A stretch of DNA of 64,000 bases, from contig OZ037771.1 in assembly GCA_964035545.1 (NCBI GenBank), positions 1,871,628-1,935,627 on the forward strand, in the 5' to 3' direction. The stretch is from Bugula neritina (Eukaryota; Animalia; Bryozoa). The position numbers and the translations under genes were made by a program. Numbering within the stretch: the stretch's first letter is position 1; every line of letters begins with the position of its first letter. The notes below the pieces were generated by a model. It saw nothing but the letters and a program-made list of their open reading frames with translations, was not told the origin of the DNA and ran no database searches. Below, piece by piece: positions 8,606 to 53,429 of the stretch.

Positions 8606-9289
<684 letters not shown>

Positions 9290-15156: not shown

Positions 15157-18100
15157 ATGACAGAGTGGTGGAGCTCACAGAGAAATCTCATGTCCCAGCT
15201 TCATTCTAAAGAACACAGAATGCAGAAACTAACCAACATAAAAGTGGACATGAAAGACCACAGCGGGAAACGAGAGGAAAGAAACAACTGTGGAATCTGT
15301 GTGCTCTTCACCATCTTTCTCGTCTTTGTCTTCATAGTTGCCATGATCTGCATTGGAGTCGTCTACATCCAAAACCTGCAGACAAACCTGGTTAACCTGG
15401 AGAAGCGAGTCAGAGACTTGGAAAGGCAGTCTTCCAAGCAAACAACCTTCAAGGTAAGTATACCGGTATATTATTGTGTAATTGCTGTTTTTGATAGTTT
15501 ATTTGAATTATTAGTACAAGACAAATGTTAAAAAAATACATTTGATTTGCTTTTTAATACCTTTAACTGACAATCGTTAGTTAGGAAACGTAGGTAGTTT
15601 CACATTGTTATGCTTGCTGTTAACCTTAAGAATATCTTTGTTTTTTAAATAAACACAACCCAAAGTAGTTTTAGCAATGAGGAAGTAACCTACTTGTCTG
15701 GGTAGTTATATGAAAGCAACACACTTTGAATGCTAAAAGTTTATCTAGTGTTGAAATAAGTGACTGTCGAACTTGTGACAGTTTTGTTACAGGATACATT
15801 TTTGTTCATACAGTCTTCTCTTAAGAAACACTCCTTCAACTCTGCAGCTTAAAACTAATACATGCTTTAAATAATATATAAATGCAACATTATATGTGAT
15901 AACTTAGAAGTCATAAACTTGTAGTAAGTTAATTGTAATGTACTGTTCATATATGTCTTAGTCATTAGGTGACTGACTGCTGCAGGTTGAAGCTGTACAT
16001 ACTCCCAGCGTACTTGTTTGCAGTAGATAACAAGCAGTTTGCATTGTTGGCATTATCATATTTCTTTTGAGAGTATTTTGATATTTGAGCGATAAATTGT
16101 TGATAATTATTTTGGCAAGCTACCCAAAGATTATATAAGCTGTATCTAGTTCCTTGTATGGTATCACAGCCCCATGACTAGTATTAGACTAGTTTCTGTT
16201 ATTTCAAAGTCAGTTTTCAAAACGCAAACGCACCAGGGTCTAGTAATTCTGACGTTGCTGCAAATTTTAGGTCATTAATTATAATTCACTGATCAAAAAC
16301 ACCTCTGTTTAATGTGTTTTAAAATAAACCAATTCTAATTAGAACTCAATGATAAACAAAACATAAGAAAACTCCAAAATAAAAAAAGAGTTTTTGAGTA
16401 AATTTTGAGTGAGTTTTTGAGTGAGTTTTTGAGTAAGTGAGTGAGTGTGTTAGTTAGTGAATGAGTTAGTGTGAGTGAGTGAACAACAATTGTTGACAAC
16501 CACAGTTAATGATTTACTTAGCAACTGGAGCGCAGGGGAATTTTTAGGTCCTTAGGATTCTACTAGCTGATTAACCTGGGACTTCCCCTTGTTTCTCGCA
16601 AAAGACCCACAAGCTTTTGATTGATGAATAGCTTCAGATTAGCATTGATTTTGCTAACATAAGTATGTCAACATTTCAAAAACATGGAAACTTATCTTGA
16701 AATTTTCCTGGAAGGAGAGTGTCCATACATTGATAAAGTGTCACAGTTTAATGTACACTGGATAAAGATTAATATTACCAAGAGCTTTTATCCTTACTGT
16801 CTATCTCACTAACAAAACAAGCGTCAACTAGTCTCGTTACTTTATCCATCTTGGAGATTTAAATTTATAATGAAACTTATAATAACTGAAGTTTTAATGT
16901 AATACTTTAAATTTGTTTGATTTGGAAGCTTCTAGGTTTATAAAATCTTTCTGAATGCATGTGTTATAGATTTTTTCAGTGGTTGTGTGCCCACAAATAT
17001 ATATCTAATTTTTTCAGAAAACTGCAGCTATGAAATAAAAAACAACTTGGTGCACACATGGATGGTTTATTTTGGACTAATGTAAGACCTCCTGCTAAGA
17101 TATTGTTATTATGTTTCCTGGCAGAATTGAAATAATGAGCTATAATATAATTATAAATAGAAAGCAGTCAACTGTACAACTCTTATAGAAATTACCCTGG
17201 ATTTTTGGCAGCAGCTACCAGCTAACAGTGTAAACAAAGTTATCAAGAGTTATCAATACAATATATATGCATATCCAGCTTTAGATTAAACAAGAGTTTG
17301 TTTTAATAGATATAATATAATACTATATTCATTTGCATTATTTATTCAACATTTTTAGAGCAAAGACAATAGAGAGGAGAAGGCAACTCTAAGAATCAAA
17401 AGGAACACACATGATCACGATGAAGGAGAAGACGACCACATCCGGCTGGAGCACCACGGTCAGTTAACTTGCAATAACTTTGCTAGGAAATATGTAACAT
17501 ATTATTATGTTACATATTTCCTTAGAATGCTATTTGGTTTGCTCTATTAATATACTGCCTAAGATGTGTAAAAGTGCAAAATGTATCAACCAAAGTTATG
17601 GGATAATCACAAAGTAAAACTTCATGTTTCAGGTATACCCACCCACCATGTTGCCTACATCTTTGGAGATCCCAAGAAAGTTGAGGAGCATGTTTTACGT
17701 AACGGTAACAGAAAAATATATAACAACATAGCTGTTGTAGTATAATTTAATCCTTAATATTATATTACAATATAGCTATCATATTATCATAATGGCATAA
17801 ATTTGTCATCATTTTGCGTGGGAGCAGATATAATTGTAAACAAAAATTTTTCATCAGCTAAATTAATTTGCCTCTTATTGAAATACTAATTTTGCAAAAC
17901 CTGGTGACTAAATGTTAGGAGTACAACTCCTACTAACTTACACACATACCTTGTTAGGAAAACTACATGATAATATATAGGCATCAAACCTATAGTTTTT
18001 CAATAATGTATGACACTCATTCCTTAACTTTGCAAATAGTATGTAATATATTATGATATCTATTAGGGCATGCTATGTGACCAGCTTTCATTATGTGCAG

Positions 18101-20752
18101 CCATATTCAAAAATACACTTACAGTCAGCTATAGACTGTGGTTTCACACACCTTAAATTGAAAATTATAAACATTGGATTTTTGATTGTAAATTCTGATG
18201 ACAATTCAATACAATGAAATTATTGAAAAAAGAAATAAGCTGCAATTAAAACCTGTACACGCAACTATTTTGTTCTTTAAAGCACAATCAAAGGCTTGCA
18301 TTATATATGAAACTTGAATCAACAATCGATTTAATGAATAAATTGCACTCTTGCTGTGAAAGATTGATAAAGTTAAAAACTTGCAAACAATAAATCGAGC
18401 AATATTTGCACGCATTTTTTATGAAATGAAAAATAGAACAGAACTCATTAACTTTTGGAGACAAATTACAGCTGAAATAAAAGCTTTGAAATAAAAGTTG
18501 AATGAATAAAGCTGCAGTGCTAACCAGATTATTATTCTATACACACCACCTTCCTACTATTTCGGCAGATTCATCTCATTGGTTTCCAAACGACCTGTCT
18601 AACTACGATAGATCGGAATATGGAAACAAGTATTTTGAAAGAATTGACAACCAGATATGGTGCCCTGCCCCCAGTAAAAATGGATATGGGCGTTACCAGA
18701 CTACTGGTAAGTACATTAGTACTATCACTGATGTTTTCATTGGTTAAACGTTTTAGGTTTATTTTCTTTTGACGCTCTGTTTAAACCAAATGGTAAAAAA
18801 AATGGGTGTGATGGCACCTTAATGGTGAATATAAAAAACCGGGTGCATTTTTTTGTGCAAAGAAAGTTCACGGACAGGCAGACAAAATGTTGTTAACTTG
18901 TAAGCCAGCTTTGAATCATAATTTCCGTGTGATACTGATCAGGCTACCACCTAACGAAGCCCAATTTTTGTTTCGAATAAAATGAGGCACAAATTTATAA
19001 TTTAATATTGTAATATTTTATAGCTTTTCTTTATAATGTTTTTGTTGCACTTTGCAAACGACTCATTTTTCAAGAAAGAAAATTGCCCTTATTGGCTTCT
19101 TTCCATAGTTAAGCATGACATAACAGCTACTTTTAATATTTTTAAGATGAGCAAAAATTTTCCGGTAAAATAAGGTCTTAAACTAACTTTTTTATTCACC
19201 GATAGACAATATTTTTAGTACCAGGCTCGTTAGATTTACAAATACTCTCAATGAACTTCAGCTGCACATTATTTGAAAACTTCCTTCAAACTTTTTGGAC
19301 AAGCATTTTCATCATATCATAGTTATTGATTAGATATATTTATAATTGCTATCTTTAATACAAAGCAGATACATTTTAAATTTGTTTTTAGAATTTGAAT
19401 TATTTTAAAAAAAATTCAACTAAATTAAATAAAAGAACTGACCTCTAATTATCTGTCACAGGATCACCTTTTTTAAACTTAGCTTAATACTGTTATACCC
19501 TTTTGACAATTTTTTTTTACATATTTGCTTATATTTGTAGTCAAAAATCCCTTTTACGACTACTTTGCAAAAGCTGGGTGGATGAAAAACAATCATCGTT
19601 CTCATGAAAATTACGAGCTGCACAGTGATGGAAAAATCTCAGTGAAGAAAGCCGGGCTGTACATTGTACACGCCAGTGTAAGTTTAATAAAAGCAACGTG
19701 GTAATATTATAACAAAATCAAATGCTACTTCAAACTGTTTAAAAAATATTTTTCTCGCATTTTGAATTATAAGTTATGACTGTTTAATTTTTTTTTAATG
19801 TTTCTCGTTTATCTTTGTTTTATTTCTTAATAAAATTTATAAAGAGCATCAATTAACAAAACTTATGCTGAGCATGCAATCAAAATTATCTACTTTTGTA
19901 GTAAATAACGAAATTTCAATTTTACTTTTTAGATCCATTTCAGCGACCTAACAAAAAGGGATAACCCATACTATGGAGTATACAAGACTGACCGTAATGA
20001 GAATAATACAGCTTTAATTAGTAAATGTGTTGCGACAACGTTTGAAAACCCAGAAGAAGATATACTAGGAGTGTACCCATGTCAAGCTTGGCAGGTGAGT
20101 CATAAGTTGCAAACCACCTGTTTATGCAAATAAAGTAAGAAAATAATAAACAGTTAACTGCTTTCAAATTGCTAAGCTATATTGCTCATTAAATAGCTGC
20201 TTTGTCTGAGTTGTTATACAAGAATAAAAATGTTGATCTAAGTGAAAATATTTATCAATATTATATTTTGTTATAAACTTTGCAAATATCTGTTGAGATA
20301 GGTGGTTTAATTTGGATGTGCTAAAACATACAATCTTTTAAAATTTAGTAAAACAGCACTACCCAAACTATTGTACATACGTTTAACTACAAATTGTAAT
20401 ATTTAATTTTTTAGAATTTAATTTTGTTTTCTGTTGTTGTACTATATATAAAGACAGCAAACCTCAATCTAATTTTTCAACATTACATATTATACAAAGA
20501 GCTGAATGACTAACACATATTGGGAATTCTGAGACAGTTTTAAGCATCTCAGCTGACACTAATGTTTATAAATAATTGAATACTTTCTAATTTAATAGAT
20601 ATTTAATAATGTTTGTTTTAATCTTGTAGCTGGTGCCTCTAGAGCAAGGAGATTTAGTTTACCTGAAAATTTCTGGTTACACCTGGTTTAGAGTTGAGAA
20701 AGAAACCTTCCACCTTGCCCTTATACGCCTTAACAAAGAAAGACTAGAGTAA
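15157..20752 (+). CDS. TNF-superfamily ligand 1 (type II membrane, Eiger/EDA-like), 7 exons, ~342 aa
   Basis: Exons 15157-15453, 17359-17458, 17633-17704, 18569-18706, 19541-19677, 19933-20094, 20630-20752; all GT-AG and in phase. TM segment, coiled coil, furin site RIKR, TNF motifs GKISVKKAGLYIVHASIHF, SKC...YPC and LEQGDLVYLKI. The start ATG is uncertain (downstream in-frame ATGs exist). Confidence 0.88.
16578..16587 (+). promoter_or_regulatory. NF-kB consensus site (GGGACTTCCC) in intron 1 of TNF-like gene 1
   Basis: Matches GGGRNNYYCC; a partial GGGGAATTTT lies at 16535. Function is untested. Confidence 0.35.
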
Positions 20753-21207
20753 AGTTGTAGTAGAACTGACCCAGCAATCAGACTAGCAACCAGCCTAGCA
20801 ACAAGCAGAGCACCCTTTAAAAGTTAGAAAGCATGTCTAAGCATATTTTTTAGTTGGTATTTTTTAGCTTTACAAACACAGAAATTTTAAAAAATACGTT
20901 ATTCAAGCTGCTTTTATAAGTTTAAATGTTTAAGTTGCATATCTAACCTTTTTGAGTGTACATTTTAGTAGAGTGAGACAGTTGTTTAATCTTTGCTAAT
21001 ACATGTAAAATTTCTTTTTTTAATATTTTTGCTCTAAAATAATTTTGTTTCATAGACTTATATGTTTGTATATAACCATGCATACAACTTTTTCTATAAT
21101 TTGATAGTATTTGATATTTTATTGGAAATCCCGGTACATAAAACTACATATTTTATATAATATACTATCTCACTATATTTTTAATTATATATAAATATAT
21201 AAATGAT

Positions 21208-22207: not shown

Positions 22208-22750
22208 TCAAAGGTTATGGAAATAGTCTAATATAGAAGTTATGATTTCATCACTTTCAGGATCATCATCTACAGGTGTGTGAGTTGTCTCCCCAACACT
22301 GGGTGTGGAATCACCAGCAATGCTTGTATTCCCTGCAGTATTTGGTTGGTTATCAACATGTCCATTGAGGTCATGACCTTCAAGATGGTCACTGTGCACA
22401 ACTCGGCTTCTACTTTGACTTTTTAGTCTTTCTAGCTGTTCGGTTCGGCCATTTTGTACTCTACTTCCTTCACTATTGTTTGAAGGATTTGAAGGAAGCA
22501 CATGGGAACACAATCCTTCTTCTGGACACATTTTCAAAAACTGCTTTCTAAATCGAGACTTGGGCAAGAAGTAAATTCTGCAGAGGGTGTTACGAAGAGC
22601 CAATTGCTTTTGCAAGTTTTTATCTTTTGCTTTGAGCTCTTCAAGATTCTCCACTCCTAGTTCAAGCCATTGCTTACGCCTTTTCTCTATCATCTTCTTG
22701 ATGCAAAAACAAGAGCGGTTGCCTCTGTTTCTTCTGATGGTAACCCTCAT
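22208..22750 (-). CDS. SERTA-domain-like protein, type B copy 3 (180 aa)
   Basis: Intact and more diverged B paralogue with the same motifs and acceptor. Confidence 0.8.
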   Translation of the reverse strand: MRVTIRRNRGNRSCFCIKKMIEKRRKQWLELGVENLEELKAKDKNLQKQLALRNTLCRIYFLPKSRFRKQFLKMCPEEGLCSHVLPSNPSNNSEGSRVQNGRTEQLERLKSQSRSRVVHSDHLEGHDLNGHVDNQPNTAGNTSIAGDSTPSVGETTHTPVDDDPESDEIITSILDYFHNL

Positions 22751-24774: not shown

Positions 24775-25443
24775 TCAAAGTGTCTGAAGATATTGTTCTA
24801 AGAATTCTGCAGCTCTATTACATTCATATTCATCATCATTGAAAGCTTGAGGGAACTCATTAAAACTATCAGAACTTGCCAAGATAAAATCATGGGTAAA
24901 ATTATCGCTGTTGTTACTTTCCTCCATCTCCTCTCCATCTCCAGATTTATTTTTTACCTGGTCATTATCAGTGTAGCTCTGTCCACCAAAACAAGCATTG
25001 AAGTCCTGTTCGAGATAACTAAGAAAGCTCTCTGCATCAGGGCTAATCTCACTGCTATAGTCATCAAAATCTTCCGCAAAGTTCTCATCATCAGAATCTT
25101 CACTACTGTCTTCATCAAACTCCATGCTATCTTCGCTTTCATCTTCAGAAACTGAGCTCTCTTCTCCACTATCTGAGGAAGCCGATGGGGGTACATGGGG
25201 ACATAATCCCTCTTCTGGCCACATTTCTAAAAATTGCTTTCTAAACTGAGATTTAGACAAGCAATGAATTCCGTTGAGGGTGTTCCACAGAATTACTTGT
25301 TTCTGCATATTTCTATCCTTTCCTGTTAGTTCTTCCAGATTTTCTTGTCCCATTTCTAACCATTGTTTTCGCCTTTTTTTTATTTTTCTTTTGATGCAAA
25401 AACAAGGATTGTTTCCTCTATTTCTTTGAGTGGTAATGCTCAT
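24775..25443 (-). CDS. SERTA-domain-like protein, type D (B-like N-terminus, C-like tail; 222 aa)
   Basis: Acceptor tattttatag|gcacaaat precedes the ATG at 25443. N-terminus RNRGNNPCFCIKRKIKKRRKQW resembles B; the tail ending EFLEQYLQTL resembles C. Confidence 0.8.
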   Translation of the reverse strand: MSITTQRNRGNNPCFCIKRKIKKRRKQWLEMGQENLEELTGKDRNMQKQVILWNTLNGIHCLSKSQFRKQFLEMWPEEGLCPHVPPSASSDSGEESSVSEDESEDSMEFDEDSSEDSDDENFAEDFDDYSSEISPDAESFLSYLEQDFNACFGGQSYTDNDQVKNKSGDGEEMEESNNSDNFTHDFILASSDSFNEFPQAFNDDEYECNRAAEFLEQYLQTL

Positions 25444-26694
25444 ATTTGTGCCTATAAAATACATAATTTATAATAGTGTTGTTTAAGTTCAAAAATCTTC
25501 TTCTGAAATTAATCAATTTAAACTAAAAAACTGTTTTTTTTTCAAATTTTCAAGTCTTCTAAACAATTTTTATTTATAAACTTATAAGTTGAAATAAATT
25601 TTTTAGAACATATAGCTGCAGTTTCTGTTACCCAAAAACTTTTTTGTTTTATACCAGGTGAGATGTTTATTTTACCAATCAACCAGGTTTCAATGTTTAC
25701 AATAATGTCTACTGCCAATTTTAAATATGTGTATTGACTTGAATGAAAAATTACTAATTTTTTGTGGTAAATCAGAATTTTCTATTTAATTTAAATGCTA
25801 GTACAGACTTACTTTCAGTTGTGAAAGTTTTGAAATTTTATGACACCTACCTTGCAGAAAATAGAGATTCTTTGCTGTCAGTCAGCTGTATATTCAAATT
25901 GAGTCCTTATGACTGGAAGAAGCTGAGTATTCTGTAAATTTGTTAAATAACAACCTTCTTGTATCAAAGCTAAATATAGAATGATCCCCTGAAAGCTGTT
26001 CTCTGTAATTATAGAAAGCTTGCCAGATTTAGCCTGCTTGCAAAAAGCCAGGCAATTACTAAGAAAAGTAAAACATAGCTGTGGTGAGCCACCAAATTAT
26101 AGGCATCAGCTTTGCGTTAAATTTATAAAATCCGCTAACAGATATCCAATCCGTTATGTCCAATAAAATTACAACATTAAATAGTTCATTAAAGTATAAG
26201 GAATCATTAGGCTGAGGTTGGAATATAATGTACAAATGTTCAAGCTAGTTAATTACCTAAAGCTGAATAATGTACAGCTAGGAATCCTCATTGAAAGAAT
26301 GAGCTTGCAAATATTTGGTTGTATGCTGAAGCAACATGTTTAGTTGAAGGTTTAATGTAATTCAATAAGAAGATGATCTCTTAAGGTTAGAGTATTTTAC
26401 TTTGCATTTTCCTCCGCTATTCATACTTAACTTATGCAAACAGAAATTTCAAAGTTACTCAATAAAATATGTCAAGCTTCAGCCATATAAAGTTTTTTGT
26501 AGCTTTGTTTATTTTTTGTCAGTTTTGTATGACGGGCTCAGAATTATTATCATTGAGTGGGAAAAAGTTGCAGTACACATAATAGTCATCGAAAGCATTA
26601 CACAAGCAAATACATGCAGGTAGGTATATTAGGTGTATAATTAACTTTATACATGGAGTTCACATCAGCGATCAACATTGAGAAATTAAATTAC

Positions 26695-28045: not shown

Positions 28046-29193
28046 CTATCTTTAGAGCAAATTGGCTAAAATTCATAAATAATATATGAGTAACAACTAT
28101 AACAGTCTGCCACAAAATAGTTTTATTGTTTATAGACTGAATTGAAGTTTAGATATCTATATTGTAAAAGATTGTAAAAGATAGCTGCAGATAGGATAAT
28201 ATTGTTTCAGCTATCTCAAAGCAAAATTCTATATATACACACTTCTATGATATATTATATTTTATGATTTATATGTTCTTGTCAATTTTCTAGTTTTATT
28301 TACTGATATTTCACGTTAAATGGTTGCATCTACACTCTTTTTGACTAAAAGCATGCATTTTATATAAGTGATCAGGCCTACATCAAAGGGTATACAGCTG
28401 TTTTCAACCATGCAGGTCCTCTAATGTTTTCTGTGTTATTTTCAGTACTAAAAAACACGTTGTCTCCTGCACTTTGACCATAAAAGTAATTTTCAACACT
28501 CATTCTTTAGTTTTATTAGGAGTTGTCTTTTATCTAAAATTGCATCATATAAGTATAAAGCTAAGTAAAAGACAAACAGACGTTATATTTTCCAGTATTT
28601 TACTCAATAATTTAGTATAAGGCAGCCAAATAAAATATTTTTTCAATTGCTAATAGCTTTTTAAATTACCTTCAGCTACGTAAATATTATAATATAAGCC
28701 TTTAACTAAGACTGAAATCTTAACCAGTTTCAAAAGCTTAGAAGGTTGTGATTTTATCATTGTTATAACTTTTAGAGTTTAAACATAAATATGTTTTCTT
28801 TTCTTTGCGAAAAGCATCAAAAAAGCCGGACCAGAACCTTCACAATGTAACAGCGACAGCAGCTTTAGATTGGCAGCAATTAAAGAGAGCATAGTTTTAA
28901 AATACAAGATGATAAATAACACTACTAAGAATCTTGATCTTTTTTTATAAAATATCTTTATTATTATAACATATAAGCTAATTTTAGCTATTATTACTAT
29001 AATGTAGAATATTAGACTAACTAAATTTTCATTTATATCTAAAGCTGGCTGCCGAATGAAAACTATTTGTTTTGTTCTAGAATGAGGCTACAAAATCTAC
29101 ATACAAGAAAGGTATCCGCATTATCAGAAAGCCAAGTGGTTGCATTTTAAACGTAGCTTGTCTATAGAGCCATCCTTGAAAGCATTTGCCACA

Positions 29194-29319
29194 GATACCG
29201 TGACTAAAGACACTGTGACCAAAGACACTGTGACCAAAGATACTGTGACCAAAGACACTGTGACCAAAGACACTGTGACCAAAGACACTGTGACCAAAGA
29301 CACTGTGACCAAAGACACT
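29194..29319. repeat. 15-bp minisatellite (gacactgtgaccaaa) x8
   Basis: Directly visible, about 480 bp upstream of the TNF-like gene 2 ATG. Confidence 0.97.
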
Positions 29320-29799
29320 CTGATTGCAGACACCTGCTACTAAATTGTGAGTTTTATAAGTTACATTAAGTCACTGTGATTTGCATTGTATTGAGTTAAA
29401 ACTTTGATAAAATTAATTTGAGCTTTTTAAGAGATAATTACTCAGTGCTTCTGCACCCAAAGTTTAGTGAAATCAAATATAAACATTTACGCGAAATATA
29501 TAAACTACAAATTGTAAATAGTTACGTAAACTCTAGGCTTTTAAAAACAGTGTTTATGCTATTTTTCTTTCCCTGTCAAACAAAATTAATTTCTTAATTT
29601 TTACTTCCCTATACTCAGCCTTTGGCTCATTGTTTAATAATTTCTGCTATATCTTTGCTATTTTTAAATGTTTACACTGTTTTACATCATGCAAGGCGCC
29701 AGTTTGGATATAAAACATGCATTTATAAACAATTTCTTAGCATATAAACAATATTTATAATGTATCTGCATTTCATTTCAACTTAATCAGCTTAACAAG

Positions 29800-30611
29800 A
29801 TGGATGAGCAAAAAGACTTTAGCCCTAGGAAAAGACAGTCTTGGGCTGTTTGCGTTTCTGTCTTTTCTCTACTGGTAACTCTTTCCGTGGTGTGTGCTGG
29901 AGGCGTTTATGTCTACCAAACAGAACAAAGAATTGGTCAACTGGAGAAAGCAAACATTGAGTTTGATGCTTCCTCGCAAAGGGTGAGATATTGGCGTGGT
30001 TTAAATTGAGTACTTTAAGTTTGATGCAACCAATTGGTCTTTATGGTACTCGGAATGACTTGTTAACAACTAGTATATGAAACAGCATTTAAGGAATCTT
30101 ATTGCAAACTTTTTTTTCTCTTTAAATTCGTTTTATATAGTTAGAAAAATTACACCGTTGTTAATTTAATACAGATTTAAATATAAATTGCTTACTGCTG
30201 GGTTTTTGAGAGTTAAGGCCAACAAGTCTTCATGCATTTAGTCAGCTTGCTATATATTTTAATGCTTTACATTAAGTTATTTTATTTTGCTATAAGGTTG
30301 CGTGAATTTTTTTCTTCTTGCAGTCAATGCTGTAAGATATTAACACAAATATTTTTTTTTTAAAATTGCAACTTATGTTTAAAAAAGGAGAATGGAGAGA
30401 CCAGGCTTAGTCAGAAAGACTCAATTCAGGAACGCATCAAAAGACAAATAGATTTCCATGTAGAAACAGATCATGGGGCTCTTGAATATCCTGGTAGGCT
30501 AACAATTCCTCCTACACTCTGGCTTACTTTTCTAACTCTGTTGCTGTTTAATATAAACTTGCATAAAATACCTAGTCAGGAATAAAGGTTATTTTATACA
30601 CACACACACAG

Positions 30612-30708
<97 letters not shown>

Positions 30709-33377
30709 TTGTATAATAAAATATATATACAGTTCAGATCAAATAGTATCTATATTGCAGGAGTTCCATCAAGCATGATTGCTCTAATCTATGGAGATAC
30801 TGCATACCACAGAGAAGTGATGAAGTTAAACGGTAATCCTAAATTCAAACTTTGTTCCATGCAGCTGACCTACTATTAATTGTTATTTGTTGTCCACACA
30901 CCATGTTCCTGGCTACCATAGACCTACCTATAAGATAATAATTTTATAATTATTGTAAAACTTAGGCCTTGGAATATTGTGATTAAAATTAATGCATGTG
31001 ATGTATCACTTAGTCTTCACTGCAATGAATTAACTCAGATTCAAAAGATGTTCTTTTATGGTATTGCCTTCTTCTAGAATTACATAATCTTTCATTTAGC
31101 ATACGCAATGGTGAGAAGATGTAGTTTTGCTAATATTTTTCATAATAGTGTGCACATCCTGTTTGCTAAGAAATAATATGCAGCAGCACTGCCAAACTCA
31201 AATGCTTAACTTTATAATGCATATGGTATTTTTCTCCGTAAAATTTTGCCATATTACAGAGAGTAGGCTGCAGTTAGAAAGATTGGAGAAAGCAGAATAT
31301 GATTATGGCTGTCACTCAGTTATGCGTGACAAGTTAACAGAAGAGTATTGGTGCTATACTAATTCTGACACTCAAAGTGATCGTTTCATGACAGCTCGTA
31401 AGTCTAAACTTATATAGTTTACATGGCACATTCATGGTAGGCAAACAAAAGTTTTTTAGGCTTATCTCCTCTTGCTTTTTTTTTTAATAACGATTTTACA
31501 AAAATTCTTTCAAATTGTCATTGCTATAATAAGCATGTTTGTCAGGAGTTACTGTAAAACTTAGTGCTTTAAAATTCATGACAAAAAACAATATAGTAAT
31601 GTCTACTTCAGGCTTATCTCCTCCTGAATTATTTTTGTATTTATCACTAGCAGCATTTTAAATTACATACATTGCACATTGCACATTTTACCTATACATC
31701 ACCATATCTCTATGAAAATATAAAAAACTGCTAAATTCAGCCTGGCATTGAGTTATAATATTGTTTGCTCTAAATGAAGCCATAGTGAAAATATTTATAA
31801 CCAGTTTAACATAAGTTGAATAATTTAATTTATCTTTTTATATCTTCAAAGCCTCACATTTATTTTTGAGTGTGATATATTTTCAATAAAATGATCATAG
31901 TAAATGAACTTTAATATGTTTTGCAACTTAATAATTTTATTACAATGTTTTTTAAAACATCAAACTGGAAATAATGACTCGGGTCTTGTTATAAACTGCC
32001 TCAATTAAGTTTATTATAGCTATAAGCCAGTGATTAAAACTATGTACCCTAATATTTTATGCATACTATTGCTATTTTTTATGATTATTTTATAGTTTAC
32101 AATCATCGATATCCACATTTCAAGATGGCTCCTTGGATGAATACAACAAGTTCATATGAAAATTATAAGTTTACCAGCGAAGGAAATCTTCTAATTAAGA
32201 AAACAGGGTTGTACATTTTATACGCTAATGTAAGTAACTACAAAATTGTTGTATATATACTTCACTATATATAATTAAAAAAACTGATTAAATGCAGCTT
32301 TATAGACTGCTGAATAAAACGATAGAAATAAAGAAATTTCTTGAAAAAACTATATCTTTCCTTACCAGCAATTGCATGGAGCAGTAGTAGGAGCACAAGT
32401 CTAGTATAACATGAGTCATGAGTTCAGGTCAAGGCTGTTAATGATGCTAAAAAATTACTTTATCTTAACTGCTCTTGTGCCTCGCGTCAGTCAAAGCCTT
32501 CTAACCAATTTGCTAGCATGATGAGAAACACAGGCTTTAGCTTAAATTTTTTGCTATCAGAGGACTGGGTAAATTGTGCAAGCTTCAAATGAGAGATTAG
32601 ACGAGCTTTAACATGTATTCTGTTGATCAGTTTTATAAGTTATAATATATATTATATAATATTCATTATGTAATATTTATTTCATAATAATTATTATGTA
32701 ATAGTTATTATATAAAATTTATTATATAATATTTATTATGCAATATCTATCATATAATTTTTATAAGATAGTTTTTATTCTATAGCATTTATTATATAAT
32801 AATTATTATTTAATATAATATATTATATAATACTTATTGCATAGTATTTATCATTAATTAATTTTATAAATTATAATTTTTATTATATAACATTTGTTTA
32901 CAGGTAATGTTTGCTGATGTTGGACAAGGTGACCGCCCAGGTTATGGCGTGTACAAAACTACCAGTCAAAATGATGAACAGTTAATTAGCTTTTGCTTCA
33001 CATCTGATTTGGGTTATGGCACATCTTGTCAAACCTCACAGGTAAGTCAGAATAATGCCTCTGATCTGAATTATTCATATGCAGAACTATTTTGTAAGAA
33101 ACATTCTACCATTTACTTTGTCAATACTAATTAGTGCGCCAGCTTATTTTTGAATTTTAATATAATAAGCAAGTTTAAATGTTTTGCCAAATTACAGTGT
33201 CTTTCATAGTAGTTGTTAGATTAAATACAATGTTGAGTTGTTTTCTCTTTGTAGCTAGTGAGTTTAACAGCTGGTGACGAGGTTTACATGAAAATTCAGA
33301 GTTATGTATGGATCGAGTTGAAGAAGGAGAATTTCAATCTTGCTCTGATTATGCTGAACAATGAGTCACTGTTTTAG
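29800..33377 (+). CDS. TNF-superfamily ligand 2, 7 exons, ~297 aa
   Basis: Exons 29800-29982, 30388-30493, 30761-30832, 31260-31397, 32096-32229, 32904-33041, 33255-33377. Same intron phases (0,1,1,1,0,0) as gene 1. TM segment, RIKR, GNLLIKKTGLYILYANVMF, LTAGDEVYMKI. Confidence 0.88.
30598..30705. repeat. (CA)n microsatellite
   Basis: Directly visible, in intron 2 of TNF-like gene 2. Confidence 0.97.
32367..32485 (+). mobile_element. Degenerate tRNA-derived SINE-like copy
   Basis: gtcatgagttca...ggctgttaatgatgct...actgctcttgtgcc resembles the other copies. Confidence 0.45.
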
Positions 33378-34337: not shown

Positions 34338-37300
34338 ATGGAAGACAAACTCAGGCAAAATATTGATGTAACAGAAGAAAATGATAGAGTAATAACATAC
34401 AAAGCTGTTCCTAGCTCTTCCGTCATCCTACAGCAAGTGATAATAGGTGTTCTGCTGATTCTTATCGTCATGGCAACAGCCTGGCATAAAACAAGCATGG
34501 AGACACTAGAAGCCAAGGTACAGAGACTGGAAGATATACTGGTCAATGGATGTTTCGATAGTGTAAGTAAAGAGTCGATGAGTCATTGGTAATTTCAGGA
34601 AAGTTGCTGATTCATTAAAGTGTTAGCTTTAATATAAATCATCCTAGAGTAATCTGTATTATCCAAGATGCAATAGAGTGAAATTTCCATAAAAGTAAAC
34701 ACATTGTAATACATAGCTGTCTATATATTACATTTTGCAAATAGTGTAGAACTCCAAGGGATGGTGATGCAATGATCACGCACTCATTACAATATTTTGT
34801 TACAGAAGCATTCCGTGTACTTTCTAAGCAATTTTTCCAATTAAGTTTAAAATGTGCATCAAATAACTTTGAAATGATATGAAACATTTCAAGTATATTC
34901 TTTTGAATAAGTATATATAAGCATGCATATTTTATTGTCTTACAATGCTTAACTTTTGACGTTTCTATTTTTGGTGAATTTGCGAAATAAGTTCTCACTA
35001 TAATGTATTATAATGCAGCATGGAATTGTTGTACTTTTCCTAATGCCAGCTCTGAAAAAGTTTAGTTCCCTTGATTTACTTGGTATTGTTATGGTTGTAA
35101 AGTTATTATGCTTTTTGAAGTAACAGAAAACATTGCAGCTAGTGATAATAGCAATACATATGGCATAGTCAATCAAATTAATCATTCTTTGACATATTGC
35201 CAACCACAGAAAAAGTTCCTTGTACAAAATTTCCTAGTAGTCATAATGGTAATTACATTTATAAGCGGGAACAAATAAGTTACATCTCAATGCTAAAAGT
35301 AGATTATTTATTGTGCTAAAAAGTCACGAGAAAGTGAGTACAGTGAGCACAAGGAACCAAAATGCTATTGCTTTCTAAGTCATAAGCTTAAAATCATTAA
35401 GCAAAACTTATAAAACCTATACTAAACAACATGAAGTTAGTTAGGTACTTTAAGCTAACCTTCATGACATTGTATACTTTTTCCTTGAACACTTATTATT
35501 TTTTCTCTGTTTGCAAAAAATTCAGCTAGATCTTGGTATTTCAGTTTTCAAAGTTACATTTTTTCCTTTTGTCGTTAATAGCAGAAGAATGGGAAGAAAT
35601 CGGTGCATTTTGGACTGTCTGCAAAAGAGCACTACAACAAGAAAAGAAGTTTGGGCCTTTTGCAAGACACTCACATAAATTATCTTCGTACAGGTGAATC
35701 TGACCACATGAGGGATCATCATCACGGTAAGACAACTATGAACAAACACACAAAACGATTTATCACTGCACTAAAACATTTTCAAAAACTTCTTGGAACT
35801 GAGATAGATCACTTTCGTGGTAAAATTTAAGGAAGTTTTGAATGATAAGATTAAAGCAATGTTTAAGTATAAAGCCACTCAGATTAAGGGGGTGTGACTC
35901 AGGGGGTGTGGCTCAGGAGGTGTGGCTCAGGTGGTGTGGCTCAGGAGGTGTGGCTCAAGGGGTGTGGCTCAGGAGGTGTGGCTCAAGGGAAATAACTAAA
36001 CTTATTTGAGATGAGTTGTAAATTCCCCCCAACAAGGTTATGTAATCAAAAGAACTGAAAAGTGTTTTGGTTAAACCGGGCTAATATTTAAATAAGGCAC
36101 AGGAGCAATTATGACTGGATGCTTTTCCTAACATCACCAGTGGCCTTTGTCTGGGCTTGAACCCATGACTTCGTGTTTACTAGGCAAATATGCTCTAACT
36201 CCTTGACCACGGCTGCTATAACATCAGTTTTCAATAAGTATTTATCACTTCTATTAGGAAGATACAACTACTGCAAGTATCTCTACTGTTTGTTTCAATA
36301 GTCAACAAATAACAGCACTAAAACCTCCTATCTTTTGTTGCTATGACAACCTGAATCACCATAACAACTGTTGTGTTACTTTGTTTTAGGTTTGAGCGTC
36401 AGCAACATTGCCCTGCTTTATGCTGACCCTCTACACATCTCAGATATTAGCAATGCTTCAACAAGTACGTAAATATTTACTTTAACATAGATAAATCATA
36501 AAGAGAATATGCTATTGGAGGTGCTGATATAGTTTTAAAGTTATATTAGTACATGCATGACCAGAGCTTTCATCTCAGGTTATATTGTTTGGCATTGCTT
36601 AAAAGTTGCGAAGTAGTAGTAATAGATGTATAGGCTGCATTTTAAATAATTACAATTACAACATTACAGATATAATAAAATAATATGTGTGATAAATATA
36701 GAACAAAATGGTATAAAATTAAATAACGTTTTACAAGTGCCACTCAGTAATATTATAAGAAAATTTTTTTGATATTTAGCTCTGTAGGCGTATAACTGAA
36801 ACAAATGCTTTTTGGTGGGCAAGTTTTTCAAGTAAAAAGATATTGTATAATTACTAAAAATTAAAGCTATTTATTATTCTAAATGTACTTTTTGCAAATT
36901 ATTTGTATGATGGAATGTGTACGTTTAATGTTTAAAAGTAAAAAAATCAATAAATGATAAAATATTTTAGCAATATAAAAGAGCATAAAAATTGCTTTAT
37001 ATAGATATTATAGGTGCTTTGCTATTGAATAAAAAATGGTTGCCACTCGTCAAGTTTAAAATTATTTCCAAGAGCTGTTAATTAAAATAAAATCAGGATT
37101 TGAGTTATCTAATTGAAATTTTAATAGCAATACTGTTTATAAAACATGTTTAGCAGCTGCAAGCATGAAGATGCAACCCTCCCCTCAACCAAACAACCCT
37201 GACTGTTTCAAGAATGGAAAGGGTAGCATCTGGTGTCGACCTTTGAACCAATATCAAAAGCACAAGTTCAAAATCAAAAGTAAACTACTATTGTTATTTT

Positions 37301-37451
37301 GATTTTAATCCCAAATGGCACCTATTTTATACACTTTGGAATATTAATATTTCTTATATCAATTATTGTAAGATGTTGTTTAAAGCCATAATATATAATA
37401 TAGATGATTATATAAATTATATATATGTGTGTGTGTGTGTGCGTGTGTGTG

Positions 37452-37515
<64 letters not shown>

Positions 37516-39340
37516 TGTGTGTGTATCCATTTGAAGAACTTACTATTAATCTAAAGCACATAATTATTATACACATGTTCTACACTCGCTATAATATACC
37601 TATTACAATGTATATGCCTATATACTATATTATATATTACGAACCTGCTAAGAACCCATGACACACCTACTATAGGTATACTAAGTACCTAAGACACACC
37701 TACTATAGGTATACTAAGTACCTAAGACACACCTACTATAGGTATACTAAGTACCTAAGACACACCTACTATAGGTATACTAAGTACCTAAGACACACCT
37801 ACTATAGATATACTAAGAACCTAAGACACACCTACTATAGGTATACTAAGCACCTAAGATATTTAGAACAAAACTAGAATTTTTTTCTTTTTATAAGGCT
37901 TATTACTTTATTTTATCATTTTACTTTAGAGTAAAAAATTTTATAGAGCTTATTTAAACACTCTAAATATTGAATTATCTCACTATATTATTTTAATGCA
38001 ATATAGAAACCTATTATATACATACGTAATTCTGTCAAAAGGCTACAACTTATAACATGAATTAAACTTTCCATCAGGTATAACAGGGCATTATCCTTAC
38101 TTCAAGCCGGCACCTTGGATGACTGACTCTCTCTCTGAGCAGAATTTCAATGCTTCTCTCTCGGAGAAAGGTGAAGTCACCATTTTGACTTCCGGAATAT
38201 ACATTATAACCTCAAATGTGAGTACATAATATAGTTCTTATCCTGGTATTATCAAATATCATTTTACTACAGAGTCTGTGACCAGCTGAACAATCAGCCA
38301 AGTCCTACTAGTTGTCAGCTACCCTAGTATTTCAATCAGTAATCAATGAGCTACAGAGTATATGAACATACGCTATCGCAGAGAGTTGCTGTCAATATTT
38401 TAGGTAGACAAAATTTTCTACAGCTTAGAGATTGGCAATAAAAATTGAAACTCCTTAAAATGCTGCCTTTTGCTTTTAACTACTTGCGTTATTATTATAA
38501 CATTTTTCTTCAATAATAAACCTCATGCGGTTTTATAATCACTATCCTTGTAAGAACCTCTGGTGAAAAGAAGTTTTTAGCAGGAGCTAAGGCCTTGTTT
38601 TCTATGTGTTAAAAGAACATTTATATCTGAATGGTCTTCCTAACATCACTAATGACCTTTACTATTTGAACCATTGACCCCGTGTTTACTAAGCCATTGC
38701 TCTATCCACCAGACCAATACTGTTACCAACCACTGTTTTTAATATTCATTAAATAAGCTTGCTTTCATAATCTACTTTTACATAATCGTAAATGCAGATG
38801 GATTTTCCTGAAGTCAAGTTTGAGAAAGTGTACTACGGGGTGTACCGACACGTCCCAACCAATGATAAAGATGAAGAACTGAGTTTATGCTCTTTTTCTG
38901 CTGCTAACAAAGGCAGTGGAGGGCAATACCCCTGCCGCACTTGGCAGGTAAAATATCCAAGTTTTAAACTTTATACATCCTATGAGTTTGAAAGATAATT
39001 GCTTTCAATAATAGTTATAAATAATTAGAGTACTTTACAATTTAATTTATTGAAAATTAATAAGTGAGAAATATTTTTGTTTAAACTACTTTATTTATTT
39101 AAATAAACAAAGGAAACTATATTCTCACCAGCTAGCAGTTTCATTAAAAATAAACATTTTGTTTATTCGTTTATTTTATTTCGTGTTATTATGAAATTAT
39201 AAATTGCAATATACTTTTTGTAGTTGGCAACACTAAATGCAGGAGACAAAATATACTTGAGAATTAGTGGGTCTAACTGGTTCAACATTAATAAGAACTT
39301 CTTTCTTGCTCTCATCAAACTTAATGAATGGACTTTGTGA
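34338..39340 (+). CDS. TNF-superfamily ligand 3, 7 exons, ~325 aa
   Basis: Exons 34338-34562, 35582(or 35585)-35726, 36390-36464, 37154(or 37157)-37279, 38078-38217, 38798-38947, 39224-39340. Motifs GEVTILTSGIYIITSNMDF, LC...YPC, LNAGDKIYLRI. Confidence 0.88.
35888..35985. repeat. 14-bp G-rich minisatellite (ggaggtgtggctca) x7
   Basis: Directly visible, in intron 2 of TNF-like gene 3. Confidence 0.95.
36094..36218 (-). mobile_element. tRNA-derived SINE-like element
   Basis: The reverse complement has a B-box-like gggttcaagccc and the core ggccactggtgatgttaggaaaagcatcc. Confidence 0.6.
37426..37524. repeat. Compound (TG)n/(TGCG)n microsatellite
   Basis: Directly visible. Confidence 0.97.
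37648..37859. repeat. 33-bp minisatellite (ctaagtacctaagacacacctactataggtata) x6.4
   Basis: Directly visible, in intron 4 of TNF-like gene 3. Confidence 0.97.
38620..38726 (-). mobile_element. Degenerate tRNA-derived SINE-like copy
   Basis: Shares ttcctaacatcac...cgtgtttacta with the 36.1-kb copy. Confidence 0.5.
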
Positions 39341-40530: not shown

Positions 40531-43500
40531 ATGGAGAGCAAAATGGAACAAACCATTGACCTGATGGAACGAAATAACAAAGTACCTAATCATAAGAAAG
40601 GCAAGAGCTCTGTGGTGTGCCCCTCTAGTGCTGTGTTATTAGTGACAGCATCGTTGTTGTTGGCAGTGGTTGCCATAGTAACAGCCTGCATCTTGACATT
40701 CAATCTCCGGGAGTCACAACAAAGGGATGCCAAGAGCATTGAGGTACTAAAGGCTAAAGTACAGAAACTGGAAGATCAACAGGCCAATGGGTGTTGTAGT
40801 AATGTAAGTATTTATTCTTGTGAGTAATTGGTAATTTCAGGGAAGTTTTGAGTCTGTCAATAACTGTTTTCTTTTGATGTTAGGAATGATAATGGTATAC
40901 TAGATGGAACTAGGATATTGTTATTGTTAATGAAAGGTCGTAATATCCAAGGTGTAATAAGATGGAAATTTCCAAACTAACTGATTTTATTTGATTAAGC
41001 TTGTAAATAATTGCATCTAGCTTAATATAAATACAAGAGCTAAAAGAATCTTTGATCTAACATAGTTTGCTAAACTGTCAAATTGCTACAATTTTCCATT
41101 ACAGATCTGTAGGAGAAAAACCTCAGGGATAATATGCTTAATTAGAAAAGATAACTCCAAACTTATATTTGGTTTAAAGAATAAAAATTTATCAGTTATA
41201 GCTTACTATGAAGTTAAATTGTCCACCTTGAAGTCGTGTCTGTTGCGAAAAAAATCAAGTTGATAAATTCAATGCAATAGAATTCATAATAATGCACAAA
41301 ATTCCTTGTAGTGTGAGTTTCCTGGTTTTATTACATGTACCTGTTTATGTAATACAATATCATTAAATTCTGAAACTAGGCTCTATTTTCACTGGCTTTA
41401 GTGAAATATGAAATGGCGCCCGGACATTATACAAAACCTAACCTTACTGGCTTGTCATAAAATTTATGAGCACTTATGAATTATCATTTCGATTATTTTG
41501 TTACTGTTGCCAGGGGGCAGATAAAAGGCCTTGTTTACTTATTCCGTCATTTCTAGACATACTCCCATATTTCAACCTCACAAAATACACACTTGCATCA
41601 GAAAGTTTACAGAGTAGCGACAACAGCTGCATGTAACAGCAAGTGCTTGTCGTTATGTCAACTCACGCACCATGAGCTCTTTTTTATTCTTCTGCTGTAT
41701 TAGTTCAAGTTTGTATAGCATTTGTTTTACTTGGCTGTGGTATATAGTATAAGCTTTTGATAATATTATTTGATTTTAGTCAATTGCCTGCATAAATAAT
41801 ATAATATGTTGTTGCTATTTATGTTCTGTACAAATAACATACTACTAGCCAACTACATGGGGAGTTTATCTAACAGCTTATTATGATCAGGGAATCCCCT
41901 AAGTGTTATCAAATGTCAACTTATCTCGATTGTTATTTCATAGAAGCAGTTCAATTGCCAATTGATTAAATAAAAGGCATTAGAATAATAACTTGATATC
42001 CTAGACTGGAACCATTTGTACGAAAACTTTTTACATCATGTAGCAATAATTATGGTAGTGCCTATGTTCCAGTAGCCGAGTTCTAATCTATGTCACAGGG
42101 AAAAGAATTTAGTTTCTTTTATTTGTTTTCATAGACTTGAAGATTTGTCTTTATAATACATCTGATTATTGCTTATAAAATTGATCTAAAGCAAAAGCCT
42201 TTTTCTATTTGACAAAAATTTTGCTTCTCAGATAAATTGCAAACAGACCTGAAAACAATTTTCAAGTCATGCTTTTAAACAAAGTTTTAAAAAACATATT
42301 AACAGCTGTATTTTAATAAGCACAATAATGAATTCAGTTTACCCACTCATCTATACTGCAAATATCATTGTAGAGGTGTGTTTGCTTGTCACTATAGCAA
42401 CAGCCAGGTCTTTGCATCTACTCTTTTGCCAAGTGCAATGCAAAACTTCCTGGTTAAATTATTTCTAGTTTCTTGATTTATTATTGTACTCAATGAACTA
42501 AAACTCCTAGCTATATTTCAATGATTTTAGTTAACTTAATAGTGCTTGCTGGTTTGTTCTCCCGAAACAGAAAGTCATATTTCATTATCTGGTGCACTTG
42601 AAGTGCGTTTCTTAAAGGCTTTTCCATAACAACAAAAGTTTTTCCTTAAATAAATTATCTTAAAGCAATAACTAACAGCTAAATTGTATGTTTCATTGCT
42701 ATTTAAATACAGGCTTATATAACTTTTGCTCAACTAAATTCCATAATAATAACTTAACTGTTATGGAAATTATATCAATATGTAAGTTATTATATTATGA
42801 GTATTATAATTATTATTAATTTAATAATGACTTTATCTACATTGATTTGTCTAATTAATGTGCAGAAGGACGATGACCTCGAGCCAATGCACGGTGGCAT
42901 GTCATTGAGAGAACGGTTTCGCTCCAAGAGAAACGCCAATCTCAATCTCGTACAAAGCAGCCTTCTACAGTCTATTAAACTTGAGGAATCTGACCATATA
43001 AGGAATGAGCATCATGGTGAGACAACTACAAACACATATTCGCTTGTATAAACACTTTTTGACACATTTTAGTCATACCAAAATTATAATAAAAATTTAA
43101 CTTATTAGATATAAAGACTTCCCCTGACAATTTTGTACTTTATTGCAAATATTGTAACTGTAACAAATTTGGCTATAACTGTAAACATAGCTATAACAAC
43201 AACTAAAGCTACTACGTCTACAAAGAAAACTACAACTATCACTGCTACCATAAATAAAACTACAAAATCAACTACCACTGCCCACACAACCGCAACTATA
43301 ACAACTCTAACAGCTAATTACATCATGAATCATATTTTTGTCCTGATAAAACTCATCTCATAAATTATCTTCAAAGACATCTTGAAAACATATTTGTTTG
43401 AAAATTTTGATAACAAGTTTTGGCTCTTGAGCACACAGCTTCCTTCTCTTTAAATGACCAGCTTATCCAGTTTCTCATTATTTCAAATTACTGCTGCCGC

Positions 43501-45803
43501 TGCCCATAAAGTCTAAACAGAAGCTTCGTATTTTACGTCGCTATAACAACTTTTGAATACTCTGTTACAGGACTGGCCAGCAGTCATATTGCCCTGCTCT
43601 ATGGAGACCCTCAACACATCACAGAGATTAGCAACGCTCAAACAAGTACGTGAATATTAATACATCTTTCATCAGGCAATGATGTTTATTGTGTGTTGTA
43701 TTAAAAATATTTACAATTAATACTAATAAATATAAATAGAAAGTAATTGGAGTTATTAGGTTCAATATAATTTACTTAACAATATAAAGAGCTAAATATA
43801 AATATCAATATGACAAATTTTAATGTATTGATATTTATAATTAGCTATTATATTGTTAATTAAATTATATATTAAACTTCATAAATTCAATTACTTTTTA
43901 TTTGATTTTAGACTTAATATTATATTTACATGTAGGCTTACTTATTAAATGTATGCCTAGATGATTATATAATAGTCTATTACTACAATAATGATTTGCT
44001 CCCTCTCTTGCCTGTAAGTTTTGGATATACTGTATGTATTTACTGGCAGCTCCAAACGCAGACCTCAGAATGCGACCTTCATCTCAACCTCTGAACCCTC
44101 TGTGTGCTAGCATGTCTGAGAATGGAAACAGTGACATCTGGTGTAAGCCTCTAAACCAGTACCAGAAACACAAGTTCATGTTATGGGGTAAGAGCCGTGT
44201 TGTTATTTGGATGACATAATATTACACTTAATTTCAGTCTTTAACTTCTCAAGCTTCTAATAAATTTTTAAAACTAGTCATGTGTGTTTTTTTGAATTTA
44301 ATATTGACGTCTCAAGTAACAGAGGGTAAATAAAACTATCAAATAATATTTTATTTCAAGAGCCTTGCTGGTTTTGACTTTTCATTAAATAAACGTTTCT
44401 TGGTTCAGGTTGTCGGTGTTAAGCTTAACAAGTAATGAGTTTTCATGGATGCAGACACAACTATTAAATTATAATCATAATTTGAGTTATGCAGAGTTTG
44501 ATCAGATTATATATAACTTGTATTAAATCATATTTTTTTGCATATAGATCATAGTGGATACTTCCCATACTTTAAGAAAGCTGAATGGATGAATAGCAGA
44601 CTTTCTCGAAAAAACTTCTTGGTTTCCCATTCCGAGAAGAGACAACTTCTAGTTCAAACTAAAGGCATCTACATTGTAGCCTCAAATGTAAGTAACAGAT
44701 TTCAGTTCAAAAAGTAAATTAAGTAAATATTCACTTATAATACCAATGTCTGGCTCTAATAAGCATTTGATTTTGATCTAATGATTTACTATTGATTTAA
44801 CTTAACTTGCAAATATGTTAAAACTAAAATGAAATAATGCTAAAGGCTCTATAAGTGTTGATTATGATGCGTGTAAAAGAAGGTGCATAGTAACCATCTT
44901 TTTACTAAGTTTCAAGTATTTTATAATATTTTTGTTTTAGAAAATTCAATCATTTTTAAATATGCCTATTTCAATGCTACTTGTGTAAAAATTTCCAATT
45001 TGTGTTTTAGATGCATTTCTCTGAGATTCAATCTGATGATCATGAAATCTTTCACTACGGAGTATACAAGACCAATTCAACTGATGGCGATATTCAAACT
45101 CTTAGCCTGTGTACATTTACTGCGGCTAGCAACAGGAGTGGTGGGGTATACCCATGTCCCACTTGGCAGGTAAACCTCTGAGGCTATAATAAAGATTTTC
45201 CTTGACAGATGCAATTATACAATATAGTCATATAAAAAACATCCATGCATTTTTCAAACTTGAAATTACTTACCACTGTTAAAGAGTGATACAGATTAAT
45301 ACCCTAATTTTTAAATTTGTGATGCTATACTAATTGGGTGATGATTAAATAATAACCCAATAGACTGCGATGTCATTGCTTAATATAAAAAATTAATTAC
45401 TCAATATGAATATAATATTTGTTTGATTAAAATATGATATCTCAATAAACTATGTATATTAGTATACTAAAATAATTTACGGACAAAATAATATAAGTTA
45501 GGATTCGATAATAAAAAAAAAGCTGTTTTTATATTGTTGACGAAAATAACAAAGCACTGCATGAACCAAAAACTGACCCCAGGTAAGGGGTGGTGTACTC
45601 GACAATGTCAATCACATAGTTTCATCTGGTGCAATTGTTATCCATCAATTTACAATATTAGGTTTCAAATTTTAATTTTTTTGCAGTTGGCATCTCTGGA
45701 AGCTGGAGATAAAGTCTTTCTCAAGATTAGCGGCTTCAACTGGTTTAATGTTGATAAGAATTTCTTCCTTGCTGTTATAAAGCTCAACGACTGGGGTGTA
45801 TGA
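40531..45803 (+). CDS. TNF-superfamily ligand 4, 7 exons, ~350 aa
   Basis: Exons 40531-40803, 42866-43016, 43571-43645, 44050-44187, 44548-44687, 45011-45169, 45687-45803. TM segment, furin site RSKR, LLVQTKGIYIVASNMHF, LC...YPC, LEAGDKVFLKI. Closest paralogue of gene 3. Confidence 0.88.
41890..41899 (+). promoter_or_regulatory. NF-kB consensus site (GGGAATCCCC) in intron 1 of TNF-like gene 4
   Basis: Matches GGGRNNYYCC; a kB-like palindrome GGAAATTTCC lies at 40964-40973 in the same intron. Function is untested. Confidence 0.35.

Positions 45804-46992: not shown

Positions 46993-53429
<6,437 letters not shown>

Follow-up and report, generated by a model that had tools for sequence, protein, structure and literature searches.

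A candidate TNF-ligand gene array in the bryozoan Bugula neritina with an exon-encoded insert in the predicted A-A' loop

Ligands of the TNF superfamily are among the best studied of all cytokines, and their choice of receptor is set by a few surface loops. Mutually exclusive use of tandem exons is a general mechanism, familiar for example from tropomyosin and arthropod Dscam. We know of no mutually exclusive exon pair reported in any TNF ligand, and full-text literature searches for such a pair found none. Among described ligands, three are closest to the genes considered here. In EDA, a splice difference of two residues inside the TNF domain switches the receptor between EDAR and XEDAR (PMC8685516). 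In TRAIL, an insertion of ~12-16 residues between strands A and A' is credited with receptor recognition in a passage of PMC10402122 that cites Cha et al. 1999 and 2000. Eiger (6i50, 6zt0), like the predicted proteins described below, is an invertebrate type II membrane TNF ligand. This report concerns a window of 64,000 nucleotides from the bryozoan Bugula neritina (contig OZ037771.1, positions 1,871,628 to 1,935,627), which contains four genes, termed G1 to G4, with a separate and variable exon 4 inside the presumed TNF homology domain. The reading that we favor, to which we assign a probability of roughly 0.6, is that they encode type II membrane TNF ligands of a family restricted to bryozoans, that they form part of a tandem array of six genes, and that exon 4 is a cassette serving as an exchangeable A-A' loop module that tunes the choice of binding partner.

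Gene models were obtained from three-frame translations, with splice sites picked by phase and by agreement among paralogs (Table 1). All four reading frames are complete and free of internal stops, all introns have GT-AG borders, and the intron phases are 0, 1, 1, 1, 0, 0 in every gene. The common seven-exon architecture proposed in a preliminary description of this DNA is thus upheld. As read from the translations, exon 1 encodes a cytoplasmic tail and a membrane anchor, exon 2 a stalk with a dibasic motif of the R-x-K/R-R type, and exons 3 and 5 to 7 the TNF homology domain. The exon-1 translations of all four genes directly display type II topology, with a charged N-terminus followed by one hydrophobic stretch of ~20-25 residues and no signal peptide, and the stalk exons are devoid of Gly-X-Y repeats. 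Exon 6 contains two Cys residues that are invariant in G1 to G4, and exon 7 ends in a motif of the FxLALIxLN type.

The family extends beyond the window. In the 216-Mb assembly, exon-5 and exon-7 profiles locate ten family loci, six of which lie in tandem on one contig (C7), namely G0a, G0b, and G1 to G4. The cluster of four genes first described is therefore confirmed within the window, but the tandem array comprises six, because two G1-like copies are situated upstream. These copies, G0a at 24 kb and G0b at 7 kb from the window start, are both intact and have seven exons. G1 and G0b evidently arose by a recent segmental duplication; identity between the two is 84-96% in the introns and 98-100% in exons 3, 5, 6, and 7. 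The other four loci are more distant paralogs on another chromosome (contig C3), at 18.62-18.79 Mb. One of these (paralog d, L008:902-1030) is probably a pseudogene, because TGA, a stop, replaces the conserved Trp codon in exon 5.

Evidence for membership in the TNF superfamily comes largely from homologs. Single exons from the window have no Pfam match (they are too short), and a search of the whole genome with PF00229, exon by exon, gave no usable match. Two weak genomic matches to PF00229, on contigs C1 and C2, were rejected because the surrounding DNA is unlike TNF genes. When single-exon profiles are compared with solved structures, Eiger, lymphotoxin, CD40L, and adiponectin are weakly on top (E 0.1-1). 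An exon-7 profile built from ten paralogs retrieved 11 clusters from 1.84 billion representatives. Three of the 11 consist of full-length proteins from another bryozoan, the cheilostome Watersipora subatra, which RefSeq lists as 'uncharacterized', and the fragment clusters include P0001 and P0007, the latter from an ENA metagenome assembly. Wider homolog searches, whether with full-length queries or with a profile, returned only Watersipora proteins. Three Watersipora family genes occur within ~170 kb of one chromosome. Over their full length, and also through exon 4, their proteins align to the products of the window genes at 24-39% identity, and P0003, P0005, and P0006 match PF00229 with 30.5, 30.2, and 29.3 bits, above the cut-off of 23. 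These comparisons support the assignment of the window genes to the TNF-superfamily ligands, of the EDA/Eiger/BAFF type. The identification as TNF ligands is likewise supported, in that Watersipora homologs pass the PF00229 cut-off and their structural models match EDA and Eiger. The further suggestion of a new TNF subfamily is reasonable to the extent that nothing has been published on the family, but RefSeq already includes orthologs, labeled uncharacterized, that have a Pfam TNF match.

AlphaFold monomer models were made for two Watersipora isoforms, P0014 and P0005, from an alignment of Watersipora proteins and exon-by-exon Bugula fragments. The exon-4 Bugula fragments were omitted from this alignment, as MAFFT had put them on exon 6, and the model of the insert consequently rests on four sequences. 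The mean predicted local distance difference test (pLDDT) scores are 81 and 79. Foldseek places Eiger first among PDB entries (6i50, E 1.4e-11), ahead of EDA, RANKL, and TRAIL. Alignment with VIA-align gives a Z score of 17.9 for EDA-A2 (root mean square deviation 1.8 A, 136 of 140 residues aligned) and of 17.7 each for EDA-A1 and Eiger, and the nearest cluster in the ESM Atlas is arthropod Eiger.

These models also bear on the suggestion, which we regard as having almost no chance of being right, that the genes encode C1q-like proteins rather than TNF ligands. Adiponectin is the best solved-structure match of the exon-7 profile (E 0.12), and the C1q domain of Caprin-2 aligns to the model with a Z score of 14.2. 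However, this domain is the first of its kind in the ranking, at rank 48, and all top structural matches are TNF ligands. Moreover, the Watersipora relatives that pass the TNF cut-off have no C1q family among their Pfam matches, and in the predicted proteins a membrane anchor at the N-terminus and a dibasic stalk take the place of a signal peptide with a collagen-like stalk.

In the homolog models, the jelly-roll TNF homology domain superposes on solved ligands, strand A included. Strand A corresponds to the exon-3 motif (model residues 16-21, pLDDT ~95), and the solved ligands align from strand A onward. It is followed by an insert of ~65 residues that derives mostly from exon 4 (model residues ~24-90, pLDDT 51-70), within which a predicted beta-hairpin (52-57/63-67) holds the residue pair W-C. 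The confident core restarts at the Trp segment of exon 5. If exon 4 is disregarded, ~25 residues separate strand A from this Trp, which is in the usual range for TNF ligands. The position of strand A relative to exon 4 had been set in advance as a test of whether the insert is only stalk, and strand A is modeled before exon 4. Therefore, the models support the view that exon 4 contributes an insert of ~45 residues in the A-A' loop and is not part of the stalk. Exon 6 has its two invariant Cys residues at model positions 159 and 177, in predicted strands E and F; a disulfide between these strands is characteristic of the EDA/BAFF/APRIL/TWEAK/Eiger subgroup, and the two residues are candidates for such a bond.

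Exon 4 had been described as an exon of 126-138 nucleotides and phase 1-1 that retains W-C in all four genes and a second Cys in G2 to G4 only, and all of these particulars are accurate. W-C is the sole invariant pair in this exon, and a Tyr of G1 exon 4 is a Cys in the upstream paralog G0a. The A-strand motif in exon 3 and the xFxxAxWM segment in exon 5 are ~64 residues apart, close to the ~60 originally estimated. Compared with G1, the other three genes are 13-22% identical at the amino-acid level for exon 4, whereas exons 5, 6, and 7 reach 30-45%, 29-41%, and 50-55%, respectively. The description of exon 4 as highly divergent is apt for these comparisons with G1, but it does not hold between G3 and G4, for which exon 4 is as conserved as the core (53% amino-acid identity, versus 47-50% in exons 5 and 6) and the nonsynonymous substitution rate (dN) is 0.32, versus 0.37-0.44 in exons 5 and 6.

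Exon 4 is present in every family member examined, which comprise the six array genes, three of the contig C3 paralogs (C3a, C3b, and C3c), and three Watersipora genes. Its length ranges from 126 to 159 nucleotides with the frame kept. Two Cys residues occur in 12 of the 14 copies compared, and the second is preceded by Trp, Phe, or Leu. These features support the view of the insert as a cassette that is family-wide and constrained. Transcript-level support for the seven-exon design in a close relative is provided by a Logan contig (L019, run SRR4125604), which is 1309 nucleotides long and intronless, encodes protein P0016, and aligns to C3a in seven blocks of 88-98% identity, exon 4 included. 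Because exon 4 is symmetric, skipping it would preserve the frame; no transcript displays such skipping.

The preliminary description also called exon 4 swappable, and one Watersipora gene is indeed annotated with two isoforms that use alternative tandem copies of this exon. The proteins P0005 (RefSeq isoform X2) and P0014 (isoform X1) are identical except for exon 4. The two exons are located at approximately L012:11718-11864 (147 nucleotides) and 11919-12056 (138 nucleotides), are both of phase 1-1 with AG/GT splice sites, and are 54 nucleotides apart. A shared layout is found in the G1-like Bugula genes. In G0a, G0b, and G1, a second exon-4-like copy with a TTTTAG acceptor and a GTAAGC donor occurs 45-54 nucleotides 3' of exon 4. 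The G0a pair consists of exons of 138 and 144 nucleotides, 45 nucleotides apart, and its second copy (L001:7781-7924) is open. Like the Watersipora exons, those of G0a have equal phase and their own splice sites, and both pairs belong to one exon-4 family. The second copy of G0b is, like that of G1, 143 nucleotides long with a stop, and the two are broken by different homopolymer indels. No indel at the G1 second copy is listed in the short-read DNA contigs of one run (X1). By its sequence, the second copy of G1 is a broken alternative exon, which leaves G1 with one working copy, the upstream one. No second exon-4 copy was seen in G3 or G4. An open frame at 31441-31554, 62 nucleotides 3' of G2 exon 4, was considered as a relic second copy and rejected (shuffle z about 0).

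Shuffle-based scores sort the exon-4 copies into two types. The upstream (type a) copy of the G1-like genes matches the upstream Watersipora exon, with z values of 6.6-8.8, and all other exon-4 copies are of the second type. G2 exon 4 groups with type-b exons (z 5.4-5.6), G3 and G4 match each other with a z of about 22, and G4 matches exon 4 of Watersipora P0003 with a z of 12-13. In a tree of exons 5-7, G3, G4, and Watersipora P0003 form one clade with support 92/92, and the G1-like genes are placed beside the tandem-pair Watersipora gene, but in an unresolved grouping. Because the exon-4 types and this tree pair Bugula lineages with Watersipora lineages, the cassette and its duplication both seem to be older than the separation of the two genera.

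In another Watersipora gene, that of P0006 and P0012 (L013), the last exon is doubled (29017-29151 and 31519-31650), and RefSeq isoforms X1 and X2 differ in the copy used. Exon duplication with alternative use seems to be recurrent in the family.

Under the favored reading, cleavage at the stalk's dibasic motif would free the ligands as soluble trimers. On the outer face of the trimer, the cassette would fold into a small beta-hairpin braced by Cys and would tune which receptor or co-factor is bound. By analogy with the TRAIL loop and the EDA splice switch, exon 4 is read as a binding-surface module whose exchange may shift the partner. Such modules could diversify by two routes, namely gene duplication with divergence of exon 4, and mutually exclusive splicing of exon-4 copies. 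The spacer of 45-54 nucleotides suggests a means for the latter, as it may sterically bar joint splicing of both copies. In a more specific version, an old mutually exclusive exon pair would give two ligands per gene that differ only in a ~45-residue Cys-braced A-A' loop module, each with its own receptor, and gene duplication would do the same job elsewhere in the family. We put this version forward tentatively, as a possibility with the odds against it.

Instead of binding a partner, the insert might serve in processing or in matrix attachment, as a second dibasic cleavage site or as a basic patch that binds proteoglycans. A run of R-R-K-R is found just after W-C in exon 4 of G0a (L001:7600-7734) and G0b (L002:7624-7758), which is a dibasic convertase-type pattern inside the ligand domain, and several other exon-4 copies are rich in Lys or Arg after the second Cys. 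However, the basic run is not conserved; it is lacking at this place in G1, and the corresponding part of G2 is acidic or neutral. We consider a processing or matrix role improbable.

Several observations weigh against our favored reading, and they begin with the G1 subgroup. G1 and G0b are 91.3% identical in exon 4 at the nucleotide level and 82% at the amino-acid level, and their core exons are almost without amino-acid change, reflecting clear purifying selection on the core (p 0.0005). Between G1 and G0a, the ratio of nonsynonymous to synonymous changes is ~24:3 in exon 4 versus 36:26 in exons 5-7 (Fisher p 0.006). Judged from these substitutions, exon 4 of the subgroup is far less constrained than the core. 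Its dN/dS (dS being the synonymous rate) is 0.46-2.7, which is not significantly greater than 1 (p 0.19) and is close to the neutral rate. One Cys is lost from exon 4 of both G1 and G0b, the same genes whose second copies are frame-broken. The pattern in this subgroup fits decay as well as it fits diversification. Other reservations concern the type of data. The Watersipora isoforms X1 and X2 are RefSeq predictions, and an RNA run for the Bugula genome was sought, with none found. Membership of the window genes in the TNF superfamily is carried over from their homologs, and the Bugula-type cDNA product P0016 scores 20.3 bits with PF00229, below the cut-off. The insert is modeled at moderate confidence from a very shallow alignment, and its two Cys residues are in or beside the predicted hairpin and are not direct cross-strand partners. 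Finally, a search with TNFR_c6 found no TNF receptor gene within the window.

Some of these facts would be expected if exon 4 were only tolerated in the loop, as a decoration or spacer that takes no part in binding, with its loss being neutral or slightly harmful and its divergence reflecting relaxed constraint. The distinct substitution ratio of the G1 subgroup is compatible with neutrality, and the lost Cys and the low to moderate pLDDT of the insert point the same way, as does a search of the ESM Atlas with the insert alone, which yielded no meaningful look-alike fold. A mere decoration is difficult to reconcile, however, with a frame, a length range, a Cys pair, and an aromatic residue or Leu before the second Cys that are maintained in two genera and at least two old lineages, or with the core-like conservation of exon 4 between G3 and G4. 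In addition, G0a and G0b agree best in their second copy of exon 4, which is 96.5% identical; their other exons are 80-89% identical, and the flanks of the copy (the upstream spacer and the rest of intron 4) 63-64%. We therefore judge the decoration account to be rather unlikely, and retain the interpretation of exon 4 as a module for partner choice.

The cluster could also be imagined to encode polymorphic allorecognition labels that govern colony fusion. Bugula is a colonial animal, and the tandem array includes a surface module that changes fast in the G1 subgroup. Against this idea, orthologous lineages are kept between Bugula and Watersipora, and variants on G1 in the short-read DNA contigs of run X1, which represent one individual, occur in exon 1, exon 7, and introns, with none in exon 4. 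Such a function is thus very unlikely, and the same observations lend no support to the immune role that the preliminary description suggested as another possibility.

The best TNFR_c6 matches in the genome are on the same contig as the array, ~430 kb before it (G000:C7:1412191-1443681), and are over the cut-off at 36.9 bits. Weaker TNFR_c6 clusters are present on contigs C1 (near 23.96-24.02 Mb) and C8 (near 7.42-7.49 Mb).

Table 1. Positions of the TNF-like genes, their exon-4 copies, and an array of small open reading frames (ORFs) in the window
Feature	Position	Strand	Details
Gene G1	15157..20752	+	342 aa; exons 15157-15453, 17359-17458, 17633-17704, 18569-18706, 19541-19677, 19933-20094, 20630-20752
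Gene G2	29800..33377	+	297 aa; exons 29800-29982, 30388-30493, 30761-30832, 31260-31397, 32096-32229, 32904-33041, 33255-33377
Gene G3	34338..39340	+	325 aa; exons 34338-34562, 35582-35726, 36390-36464, 37154-37279, 38078-38217, 38798-38947, 39224-39340
Gene G4	40531..45803	+	350 aa; exons 40531-40803, 42866-43016, 43571-43645, 44050-44187, 44548-44687, 45011-45169, 45687-45803
G1 exon 4	18569..18706	+	138 nt, phase 1-1; type a; WC kept, first Cys lost
G1 second exon-4 copy (type b)	18757..18899	+	50 nt 3' of exon 4; AG and GTAAGC sites; 143 nt, in-frame stop
G2 exon 4	31260..31397	+	138 nt, phase 1-1; Cys pair ending in WC
G3 exon 4	37154..37279	+	126 nt, phase 1-1; Cys pair ending in WC
G4 exon 4	44050..44187	+	138 nt, phase 1-1; Cys pair ending in WC
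Intronless ORF array	380-784(+), 1605-2147(-), 4734-5378(-), 6788-7177(+), 8009-8551(-), 11317-11922(-), 13397-13798(+), 22208-22750(-), 24775-25464(-)		

Other features of the window are listed here for completeness. Small intronless paralogous ORFs of 129-229 residues, which share an N-terminal C-x-C motif, surround and interrupt the TNF array; four of them were compared with Pfam and had no match. A (CA)n microsatellite of ~700 nucleotides at 8578-9342 is the source of a GC-skew spike at 8-10 kb. One minisatellite with a 15-nucleotide unit (29124-29343) is just upstream of G2, and another with a 33-nucleotide unit (37662-37874) is in intron 4 of G3, adjoining a CA/CG-rich repeat (37425-37560). 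Two exons of neighboring genes, both unrelated to the array, encode a CBM_20 starch-binding domain (48707-49006(+), E 1.9e-9) and a RING finger (55174-55473(-), E 6e-9).

A surface loop replaced by an exchangeable, exon-encoded mini-module would be a natural experiment in the rewiring of ligand specificity. The exchange would occur through gene duplication in Bugula and, apparently, through mutually exclusive splicing in Watersipora. The genes also provide a candidate ligand set for bryozoans, a phylum of colonial animals in which immune signaling is almost undescribed. What is new here is the existence of tandem exon-4 copies, their alternative use in one annotated Watersipora gene, and the shared layout in the G1-like Bugula genes.

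The tandem copies resemble known mutually exclusive exons in being homologous and of the same phase, with one used per annotated isoform. Unlike the sets in tropomyosin or Dscam, they number only two, are restricted to one gene lineage, and have a usage taken from RefSeq models. Among solved structures, Eiger is the best sequence match (E 0.0095), and VIA-align aligns 150 residues. It has no counterpart of the exon-4 insert: of its 157 residues, 150 pair with the model between residues 12 and 220. Sequence identity is ~20%, and Eiger is a single gene in flies, whereas the bryozoan family has about ten copies. TRAIL has its extra segment in the same loop as the bryozoan insert. However, the bryozoan insert is 3-4 times longer, contains Cys, and occupies a symmetric exon of its own, and as far as tested the two are not homologous. 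EDA-A1 and EDA-A2 are the best structural match to the homolog model, although EDA has a collagen-like stalk that the bryozoan proteins lack. In EDA, an alternative splice site changes two residues, whereas in the annotated Watersipora isoforms a whole cassette of ~45 residues, elsewhere in the fold, is exchanged between tandem exons. The bryozoan genes would thus be a second case of splicing inside a TNF domain, and one that is structurally far larger than that of EDA-A1/A2.

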